In this document: piece after piece, positions 46,833 through 49,824 of the stretch
Position numbering within the stretch: the first letter of the stretch is position 1
Layout of the letters: every line of letters begins with the position of its first letter
Assembly: GCA_001600695.1 (NCBI GenBank)
Contig: BCKQ01000004.1
Location: forward strand, 209,708-273,707
DNA length: 64,000 nt
From: Ascoidea asiatica JCM 7603
Lineage: Eukaryota; Fungi; Ascomycota
Reading direction: 5' to 3'
Program-made: the position numbers and the translations under genes
Notes under the pieces: model-generated
What the model was told of the DNA's origin: nothing
Databases searched by the model: none
The model's input: the letters and a program-made list of their open reading frames with translations, nothing else

Positions 46833-47858
46833 TTAAATTACACAATATAAACTTGCATAACTAACACTACTTTCATTTGGATTCATAACTTGAGAACTTT
46901 GAGAATAACCTATGAAATTGAAAAGATTATTTTTTTTACAATTTTCATAATTATCATAATCTTCATCATCTTCATCGCTATCATAATTTTCATCATTTAT
47001 AATATTTTCATTTTTATAGGATTGAATAGATAATAAAAGTAATTCAATTGGTTTTTGACCACAAATTGTATTACCAGTTTCTTCAATATAATTTTTCCAA
47101 AGAATTGGATTACCATTATTTAGGACTTTTATTGCAACATTATCAAGATATTGAATAGATTTATAAATTGGTAAAGAATAATTATTATAATTTTTTGAAG
47201 TAATATTTATAATATCATCAAGTGAATAATTTTTTAAATAAGTAATATAATTGAATCTTTTACCCCAATGACAAAAATCAGAACTTATAATAAAAGCAAA
47301 AGATTTATCATTTAAATAATTAGATAAAATTTTTGAAATTTTCATTAAGATATTATCAGATAAATGAGAAATCATTAATGGTATAATTTCAGGTAAATCT
47401 ATATTATTTTTTTTTGAAAATTTATAAATAAAAGGTAAATGTAATTCAAAAGAATGTTCATTTTTATCATCATTTGAATTCATTAATTCGAAATGATTTT
47501 TTGTTGAATTATTTTTAATTAAATTATTGATTAAGATTTTATCAGTTTTTAAATTACCAATTGGAGTATTATAATAATCATAATTTGTTGTTAAAATTTT
47601 ATCTTTAAAATAAATATGATGAGAAGGACCTAAAATAAAGATTTTTTTAATATTTTTTAAATCTAAAGTTGAATAAGATTGTGCTAAAACTTTACCAGAA
47701 TAATCATAACCAGCATGAGGACCAATAATACATCTTGCATTTTTAACTGAATTTTTAATATTTGCAGAATTTATAAAAAAATCTAGTTGAGAATTTAAAG
47801 AATCTTTTGAACCTGGATACCAAGTACCAGCATGAGTAGCAGGACGAGATAAAACCAT
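46833..47858 (-). CDS. MHO1: Memo-family protein
   Basis: RPATHAGTWY, PHAGY, LGPSHH, EHSFE, SSDFCHWG, NTICG, SSVSYAS. Confidence 0.95.
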   Translation of the reverse strand: MVLSRPATHAGTWYPGSKDSLNSQLDFFINSANIKNSVKNARCIIGPHAGYDYSGKVLAQSYSTLDLKNIKKIFILGPSHHIYFKDKILTTNYDYYNTPIGNLKTDKILINNLIKNNSTKNHFELMNSNDDKNEHSFELHLPFIYKFSKKNNIDLPEIIPLMISHLSDNILMKISKILSNYLNDKSFAFIISSDFCHWGKRFNYITYLKNYSLDDIINITSKNYNNYSLPIYKSIQYLDNVAIKVLNNGNPILWKNYIEETGNTICGQKPIELLLLSIQSYKNENIINDENYDSDEDDEDYDNYENCKKNNLFNFIGYSQSSQVMNPNESSVSYASLYCVI

Positions 47859-48314
47859 TTCTTTAACAAATAAGTTAATAAGATAAAAAAAGAAACTAAA
47901 TATAAAAAAAAAGGAGAATAAAAAGAGTAGAAAAATTTATATTATTTCGTAATGTTTATATGATTTGTAAGATTTAAAAGAAGCAAAAACAACAAAACAA
48001 GGAGAAACTTCGGTAAAAATAATTGTATTTTATTCTAATTTATTCTAATTTATTTTAAATCACCAGAAATTTCACCAGCGATAAGAAAAGAAGATAAGAA
48101 AATAAAAAGCCAGGTGATCAGCCCGGAAATCTGTCGGCTTTCAGCTGAATAAATTGCCTTTTTAATATAATTTTTGTGGTGGTGGCTTCAAACGTAAGTT
48201 TGTGTTTTTTGGGGGTGAGCGAGGTGATTTCAATTACTAGACTGGGTATGTAAAGCTAACGTTAGGGGTTATGTAATATTAGATACTACACTACTACAAT
48301 ATTTATTAGGATAT

Positions 48315-49223
48315 TTACTCTTCATCAGAATCTTCATCACCAGACACTTCCTGAGCTCTTTTTTCTTCATTTTCCATTAAAGCTTCTAATTCAGCATCAT
48401 CATTAGCAGTAACAGCTTTTGGACTCATTTTAATTCTACATTCTCCATCGAATTTTTCAATTTCTTCTTTAATAGTTTGAATTGCTTCTTCTAATAAATG
48501 AATACCTTTTTCTTTATCAAGACTTTGAGTTGATAAAACATATAAAGGTGCAGCAATTAATTTTGCTTTAATTTCAATATGAGGAATTGAAACAGATTCA
48601 CCAGCTCTTAAAGCCTTTTTTATTGCTTCAACACCTTGAATATGAAAACAAGAAACTTCAATATCTGCTCTAATTTTTGTTGCTTGTGGTGTTAATCTTC
48701 TTGCAACATAAGTTTTTAATTCTTCTAATAAATCATTTGAAGGAGATTTAATATCTTCAAATACTTCTGGATTTGTAATTGAAGATTTAAAAGCATCATA
48801 TGCATTACCATATTTTCGACTTAATGGCCATCCAATTGATTTATATAAAGTTTCTAAAGGTACATTAAATTTTTCAGCACAATGACGTAAAATTGAATGA
48901 ACTGCTTTACCTTTTGAATATCTTTCTTCACATTTTCTAGCATCTTCTTGTGATACATTACTTTTACTTAAATCAATATATCCTTTTTCTTTATCAACTC
49001 TTAAAACTGCTAAAACTTCATTTTTACCAACTCTGATTAATTTTTGAATAGATCTAATACGACGTCTTGTTAATTCTGATAATAATACCATACCTTCTAA
49101 ATTATCATATTCTAATAATTTAACATATGCTCCCATTTCTTCAATTTGTTGTACATTTACCATTACAATCTCTCCAATTTCTGGAAATTTATTTTCATAA
49201 AATCTACAATTTGTTGTACTCAT
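48315..49223 (-). CDS. SUI2: Translation initiation factor eIF2-alpha
   Basis: CRFYENKFPE, MGAYVKLLEY, SELTRRRIRSI, KGYIDLS, acidic C-terminal tail; adjacent to MHO1 as in S. cerevisiae. Confidence 0.97.
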   Translation of the reverse strand: MSTTNCRFYENKFPEIGEIVMVNVQQIEEMGAYVKLLEYDNLEGMVLLSELTRRRIRSIQKLIRVGKNEVLAVLRVDKEKGYIDLSKSNVSQEDARKCEERYSKGKAVHSILRHCAEKFNVPLETLYKSIGWPLSRKYGNAYDAFKSSITNPEVFEDIKSPSNDLLEELKTYVARRLTPQATKIRADIEVSCFHIQGVEAIKKALRAGESVSIPHIEIKAKLIAAPLYVLSTQSLDKEKGIHLLEEAIQTIKEEIEKFDGECRIKMSPKAVTANDDAELEALMENEEKRAQEVSGDEDSDEE

Positions 49224-49824
49224 TTTGATATTGGATATTTGATATTTTATATTTGATATTTTATATTTGATATTTGATATTTGATATTTGATCTGTTTCT
49301 TTTCTATTATGATTGCTATAGTATTTATGGTATTCTAGTATACTAACACTATCCTATTGTTATCCCAATAATATATCTAATCGCTATCTAAATACTATTT
49401 CAATAAAATGATCTCCAGACTGCTCTTCTTCTTCTTCTTCTTCTGTTTCTCCTTCTGTTTCTCCTTCGTCTTCTCTCTGAGATTATTTGTCATTTACAAA
49501 ACTGAACTTTTCAAGCAAATTTTTTCTGAGCGGATTCAAAACACACACTTAGGGCAGAAGGGACTATGTTAAGGTATATCCAGGACATTCTAGCCCCATT
49601 TCACGTGCGTCGCCGGTTGTGTGGTTCTTCTTTGTCCCGACACCGCTGGAGTTCATTTTCCTCGCTGTGATTTTGAACGATGGTGAAATCAGCGACAGAA
49701 ATAAAACAACGATGATAAAGATAATAGAGAAAATAGAAATAGTTTTGAAATGGTAATTGAAATACAACTGAAATAATAACTAAATATCAATTATATTCAT
49801 ATTCATCTCTTCAATATATCTTCA

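Follow-up and report, generated by a model that had tools for sequence, protein, structure and literature searches.

The Ser51 phospho-switch has its canonical form in Sui2 of S. cerevisiae and human eIF2S1, which are among the closest known counterparts of the protein analysed here, and Gcn- alleles of eIF2-alpha are reported at residues 84-89. Phosphorylated Ser51 of eIF2-alpha is not read directly by eIF2B; it is held by salt bridges to Arg63 and Lys86 of the same molecule, and changing both of these residues to Ala abolishes the phosphorylation-dependent gain in affinity (bioRxiv 10.1101/503540, Kashiwagi et al.). The KGYID motif is the docking site of the eIF2-alpha kinases and of eIF2B-alpha (PMC6513899). 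The residue equivalent to Arg88 lies near eIF2B-alpha, and Arg88 of S. pombe cross-links to both the alpha and the beta subunit of eIF2B (PMC6513899 supplement). The Ascoidea protein resembles S. cerevisiae Sui2 and human eIF2S1 in its full-length orthology, in its S1 and EIF_2_alpha domains, in the identical LLSEL-x-RRRIRSIQKLIRVG loop and KGYIDLSK segment, in the retention of Arg63 and Lys86 and in its partners, namely Gcn2, Gcn1, the alpha, beta and delta subunits of eIF2B and a GCN4 gene bearing uORFs. It differs from both in having Thr as the acceptor residue and Ser-Asn in place of Arg87-Arg88 and, relative to canonical yeast Sui2, in carrying about 20 lineage changes at positions conserved among budding yeasts.

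A natural Thr at the position of Ser51 has been described in trypanosomatids, where the residue of eIF2-alpha that becomes phosphorylated is Thr169, which corresponds to Ser51; this phosphorylation controls translation and in T. cruzi occurs under nutrient stress (PMC3218062). The same paper described the serine as invariable in every other eukaryote examined by then. Ascoidea has in common with trypanosomatids the natural Thr, the basic residues that follow it and the KGYID motif. However, the trypanosomatid proteins have a long N-terminal extension and a more diverged sequence and are served by several eIF2 kinases, whereas in Ascoidea the protein is in other respects an ordinary yeast Sui2, with Gcn2 as its sole kinase. 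A further point of comparison is an engineered allele: S. cerevisiae eIF2-alpha S51T, the subject of work by Lu et al. in 1999, was reportedly a substrate of GCN2, PKR and HRI and sustained the control of GCN4. This laboratory allele places the identical substitution in a yeast Sui2; it retains Arg87 and Arg88, whereas the Ascoidea allele is natural, fixed and devoid of both arginines.

A literature search combining Ascoidea with eIF2-alpha variants found no paper. Ascoidea is a budding-yeast genus with a natural, fixed Thr51 in which the Gcn2-eIF2B-GCN4 components are present, at a site that, trypanosomatids apart, is usually described as an invariant Ser51. On the strength of sequence comparisons, we propose that its eIF2-alpha is most likely a working phospho-Thr switch that has undergone a conservative lineage-specific change.

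The SUI2 gene of Ascoidea asiatica

The window, a stretch of 64,000 nucleotides from Ascoidea asiatica JCM 7603, carries the gene for eIF2-alpha (SUI2) on its minus strand at 48315..49223. Identified by the ORF list, Pfam and a structure match, the gene consists of a single exon of 302 codons plus stop. The ORF has no intron; residues 1-298 of the product align to S. cerevisiae eIF2-alpha (PDB 3jap_j) with an E value of 1e-130, and Pfam assigns to it an S1 (PF00575) and an EIF_2_alpha (PF07541) domain. Three departures from the usual protein had been read from the DNA in a first-pass annotation and all are present. Codon 52 (49068..49070, minus strand), which corresponds to the phospho-acceptor Ser51 (mature numbering) found in all model organisms, is ACA and places Thr in the context LLSEL-T-RRRIRS. 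Codons 88-89 (48957..48962, minus strand) are AGT AAT, so that Ser87-Asn88 directly follow KGYIDLSK where Arg87-Arg88 stand in the yeast and human proteins. Codon 28 (49140..49142, minus strand) is GAA and turns the usual IAEMG into IEEMG (A27E).

Position 51 of the Ascoidea protein is thus occupied by a phosphorylatable hydroxyl residue, and the elements needed around it are those of S. cerevisiae. In the alignment, the Arg-rich loop RRRIRS after the acceptor (49050..49067), the phosphate-clamp residues Arg63 (codon 64, 49032..49034) and Lys86 (codon 87, 48963..48965; roles per bioRxiv 10.1101/503540) and the KGYID docking motif (codons 80-84, 48972..48986; role per PMC6513899), all on the minus strand, are identical in the two proteins. 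Residues 87 and 88 are next to Lys86, and Arg88 is close to eIF2B-alpha and cross-linked to eIF2B; they therefore belong to a positively charged surface facing eIF2B, and their earlier placement in a regulatory surface, one recognised by eIF2B and the kinases, was correct.

The closest database protein is the eIF2-alpha of Ascoidea rubescens DSM 1968 (88% identity), which has Thr51, Ser87-Ser88 and IEDMG, with the same Glu27. Both species encode Thr51 by ACA and Ser87 by AGT, while position 88 is AAT in the window and AGT in A. rubescens. The values of dN (0.073) and dS (1.07) for this pair, which give a dN/dS of about 0.07, indicate deeply diverged orthologs under strong purifying selection. 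Gene order in A. rubescens is Slu7-SUI2-Memo, and in the window, too, a Memo-like ORF adjoins SUI2. Thr51 and the replacement of residues 87/88 are fixed in the Ascoidea lineage, as seen in these two deeply diverged species.

Unusual residues might also stem from faulty sequencing or assembly, from a pseudogene or from a divergent paralog lying beside a canonical copy. SUI2, however, has one genomic match in the 20.3-Mb genome; the second match (22% identity, E 1e-4) comes from an S1-domain frame that is unrelated, and the existence of another, canonical SUI2 copy is thereby ruled out. Logan contigs from three public runs belonging to two studies span 48000-49285, the Thr51 and Ser-Asn codons included, with no other letters and no gaps, at a word depth of 40-50, the runs being possibly the source data of the assembly itself. 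Furthermore, the same Thr51 and Ser87 are found in the independently sequenced A. rubescens, at the orthologous position beside a Memo-family gene, and the low dN/dS is that of a gene under constraint. Nothing was found that speaks for an artefact, an explanation to which we attach practically no weight. A miscall is ruled out, as the contigs are identical and the A. rubescens ortholog shares Thr51 and Ser87; the first-pass annotation had already argued that a single miscall could not account for both sites.

Two features were noted at the borders of the gene. Positions 49224-49292, directly against the SUI2 start codon and hence in the 5' leader or core promoter, hold a 7-base unit repeated in tandem about 10 times (plus strand TTTGATA, gene strand TATCAAA). 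The Logan contigs break at this repeat, where word depth jumps from about 50 to more than 1000; the unit must therefore recur at many other genomic sites. Directly downstream of SUI2 lies the Memo-family (MHO1-like) gene (46833-47858, minus strand), whose product ends in an acidic, Asn-rich tail of low complexity.

Residues 51, 87 and 88 in yeasts and other eukaryotes

Among the best 120 database homologs, almost all of them from budding yeasts, position 51 is Ser in 113 and Thr in A. rubescens only. Arg-Arg occupies positions 87/88 in 112 of the same 120; the exceptions comprise two KV proteins (K87, V88), one of them from Candida dubliniensis (P0021), two RK and one RA. In Saccharomycopsis crataegensis, a member of the sister genus, eIF2-alpha has Ser51 and Arg-Arg at 87/88 and already reads IEEMG. 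Since this species keeps Ser and Arg-Arg at the regulatory sites, Thr51 and the loss of both arginines arose on the Ascoidea stem. Glu27, found together with Ser51 in Saccharomycopsis, is older; A27E thus predates the other changes and is unrelated to them.

A broader survey covered 145 diverse eukaryotic sequences, made up of representatives of 50%-identity clusters and the two Ascoidea proteins. Position 51 is Ser in 122 of them, Thr in 16 (14 if the Ascoidea pair is set aside) and Q, V, H or P in seven. Of the Thr-bearing clusters that were looked up, one represents the gregarine Selenidium serpulae and the other nine environmental eukaryotes. A quick and poorly resolved tree calls for many changes of state at position 51, which argues for a repeated origin of Thr51; this quick survey suggests that, across diverse eukaryotes, roughly one eIF2-alpha cluster in ten carries Thr here. 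The seven representatives with a non-phosphorylatable residue 51 (P0185, H; P0209, Q; P0225, Q; P0238, P; P0240, Q; P0250, V; P0258, V) are candidate lineages truly lacking the Ser51 control. A basic residue, Arg or Lys, occupies position 87 in 130 of the 145 sequences, and position 88 is Arg in 96. Arg88 therefore does not qualify as near-invariant, being Val in the Candida dubliniensis protein and Arg in no more than those 96 sequences.

With two positive charges gone, and with residue 87 basic in most of the sequences surveyed, some effect on the affinity for eIF2B or for the kinase is plausible. One could suppose that Thr51 is phosphorylated but that phospho-Thr and the missing arginines alter the gain or the kinetics of the response, whether through kinase efficiency, the rate of dephosphorylation or affinity for eIF2B, with compensating changes in the alpha, beta or delta subunit of eIF2B. 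The proximity of Arg88 to eIF2B-alpha in the inhibited complex, its cross-links to alpha and beta in S. pombe and the role of the neighbouring Lys86 in the phosphate clamp are all in keeping with this idea. So is the raw association between Thr51 and a non-basic residue 87, found in 5 of 14 Thr51 lineages versus 8 of 117 Ser51 lineages (Fisher p 0.005; p 0.035 when matched for divergence). A test on phylogenetically independent pairs, however, returned p of about 1 from five supported pairs and has no power; the association is a lead and not an established result. Furthermore, the two KV proteins, including that of Candida dubliniensis, have V at position 88.

The distribution of changes along the protein also weighs against a retuned response. 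In a comparison with 113 other yeast eIF2-alpha sequences, 183 positions were at least 90% conserved, and 20 of these bear changes common to both Ascoidea, spread over the whole protein (9 of 81 conserved sites in the S1 domain and 11 of 102 in the remainder). The regulatory stretches, defined as mature residues 48-63 and 79-89, contain 27 conserved positions with 3 changes observed and 2.95 expected (hypergeometric P = 0.59); a clustering of changes in the regulatory surface was thus ruled out. At 24 of the 183 positions each of the two Ascoidea proteins departs from the consensus of yeasts, as opposed to a median of 3 and a 95th percentile of 9.4 in the other yeasts, and eIF2-alpha is therefore fast-evolving overall in this genus. 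By these counts, the regulatory surface is not singled out for change. The argument of the first-pass annotation that two changes in one surface point to co-evolution is left without statistical support. Among the other changes are I41L and V71A, at sites invariant in the 113 other yeasts, and H139N/S and Y194I, at near-invariant sites.

The kinase, eIF2B and GCN4 in Ascoidea

Ascoidea asiatica has a GCN2 gene for a protein of 1645 aa (G000 contig 4, L009:853-5790, minus strand) in which RWD, pseudokinase, kinase, HisRS-like and C-terminal domains are all present and which aligns end to end to a solved full-length Gcn2. A comparison with 114 fungal Gcn2 sequences showed that the kinase domain of both Ascoidea keeps HRDLKP, DFG and the Leu after it, the LT..GT threonines of the activation loop and the helix alpha-G sequence T.MER..LR, the part of Gcn2 that docks eIF2-alpha. 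An adaptation of the active site to Thr was considered and rejected, the Leu after DFG being kept and the activation loop and alpha-G helix unchanged. Lineage changes in Gcn2 (R814K, R817S/T, A822G, G830N and V891I/S) give no clear signal. A search of the genome for a second kinase of the eIF2-alpha type found none, the next kinases having E values of about 1e-20. GCN1 is present as an open frame of 2867 aa.

The IF-2B family has four members in the genome: the alpha, beta and delta subunits of eIF2B and MRI1, the latter recognised by reading its N-terminus. The eIF2B-alpha gene (L005:1402-2403, G000 contig 18) encodes a protein whose N-terminus is about 18 residues longer than that of the S. 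cerevisiae subunit. Contact residues were compared with the S. cerevisiae chains of 6i3m, with roles taken from PMC6572841 and PMC6513899. In eIF2B-alpha, T41, E44, R75 and Y304 are kept and H82 is Asn; in eIF2B-delta, E377 is kept and Val replaces L381; in eIF2B-beta, I118-S119 reads Phe-Thr (I118F, S119T), and both are sites of known Gcn- alleles (PMC6572841). In both Ascoidea, eIF2B-alpha moreover carries S42Q and S43A in helix 3, flanked by the contact residues T41 and E44, and the Glu at 297, which is 99% conserved among yeasts, has become Asp in the window species and His in A. rubescens. The residues kept speak for an ordinary switch, and the changes (among them alpha H82N, beta I118F/S119T and delta L381V) against it.

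Taken as possible compensations, the eIF2B-alpha changes S42Q, S43A and E297D/H would favour a retuned response, as would the two beta substitutions at Gcn- allele sites. Several of these positions vary, however, in model species: residues 42/43 are Ala-Ala in S. cerevisiae, and the human counterpart of H82 is Leu81 (PMC4787765). Moreover, the two Ascoidea share only 65% identity in eIF2B-alpha, which is hardly closer to that of A. rubescens than to those of other yeast families and contrasts with the 88% of eIF2-alpha, so that many changes in this subunit are expected anyway. Given these points, together with the even spread of changes along a fast-evolving eIF2-alpha, we regard a change in gain or kinetics as unlikely, although it deserves consideration.

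The GCN4 ortholog lies on contig 3 (L012:1465-2691, minus strand) and ends with a canonical bZIP module of basic region and zipper. Five ATGs, and no more, occur in the final 600 nt of its leader, each in the context AAAATG and each opening a uORF of 2-5 codons; no further ATG occurs in the last 690 nt. In order, the uORFs have 3, 2, 3, 5 and 2 codons and start at -561, -520, -385, -247 and -176 (contig 3, L018 reverse strand). Two pairs among them have a common start context and stop (ATCAAAATGT...TAAAT).

This inventory bears on the view that control has been given up, that is, that Thr51 is no phospho-acceptor, or that phospho-Thr51 no longer inhibits eIF2B, with amino-acid control uncoupled. 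Such an outcome might be read from the three substitutions themselves, and some eukaryotic lineages do lack a phosphorylatable residue 51. Ascoidea is different in that its two species, although their synonymous divergence is saturated, both still have a hydroxyl residue at the site, with KGYID, Arg63 and Lys86 retained as well. GCN2, GCN1, a GCN3-type eIF2B-alpha and a GCN4 leader with five uORFs are intact, and no role is known for these components in the absence of eIF2-alpha phosphorylation. GCN3 in particular is dispensable except for the sensing of phospho-eIF2, and its retention argues for a live switch. A loss of control is, on these grounds, very improbable. The first-pass annotation had spoken of altered, co-evolved or lost control by Gcn2 and eIF2B. 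Of these, loss runs against the presence of GCN2, GCN1, GCN3, GCD7, GCD2 and the GCN4 uORFs, and a retuning keeps a minor probability. Thr51 and the changes at 87/88 do not by themselves indicate a rewired stress response.

Consequences for the phosphorylation switch

Four considerations favour a working phospho-Thr switch. Thr is the only other residue used by Ser/Thr kinases; Thr51 has been held while synonymous sites reached saturation; Ascoidea has kept Gcn2 and Gcn1, the regulatory subunits of eIF2B and a GCN4 under uORF control, all of which have a known purpose that depends on phosphorylation; and lineages that have truly abandoned the site carry Q, V, H or P there. The trypanosomatid precedent and the 14 other Thr-bearing eukaryotic clusters point the same way. 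The following sequence of events can be envisaged. On the Ascoidea stem, Ser51 was replaced by Thr, the other phosphorylatable hydroxyl residue, and Arg87-Arg88 by small polar residues. Gcn2, activated via Gcn1, would dock on KGYID and phosphorylate Thr51, and the phosphate would be clamped by Arg63 and Lys86. The Arg-rich loop would then insert between the alpha and delta subunits of eIF2B and block nucleotide exchange; with the ensuing drop in ternary complex, ribosomes would bypass the short uORFs and GCN4 would be translated. We infer both the phosphorylation of Thr51 and the inhibition of eIF2B by eIF2 bearing phospho-Thr51.

On a practical level, antibodies against phospho-Ser51 may fail in organisms with Thr51. 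Ascoidea also offers a natural allele with which to probe the effects of phospho-Thr and of the 87/88 arginines on the switch.

A bolder proposal, and in our judgement a rather doubtful one, is that Thr51 has become co-adapted with the absence of Arg87/Arg88, the two together altering the gain of the switch or the kinetics of its reset. There would be less positive charge beside the clamp, and phospho-Thr would be handled differently by kinases and phosphatases; hence the altered gain or reset. If this were so, S42Q and E297D/H of eIF2B-alpha would match, and the raw association of Thr51 with a non-basic residue 87 in eukaryotes at large would reflect a general structural rule. A blunter or faster-resetting stress response could then benefit a genus known, as Ascoidea is, for ambiguous CUG decoding.

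A separate observation was made on position 51 among the best 120 homologs. Five of them (P0058, P0094, P0111, P0114 and P0117) read "L" there, and P0110 reads LLLELLRRR, with L at position 51 and again three residues earlier. The "L51" proteins are probably from yeasts of the CUG-Ser clade, in which the regulatory serine would be encoded by a reassigned CTG codon. If CTG does encode Ser51 in these yeasts, any misincorporation of Leu would yield a non-phosphorylatable eIF2-alpha.
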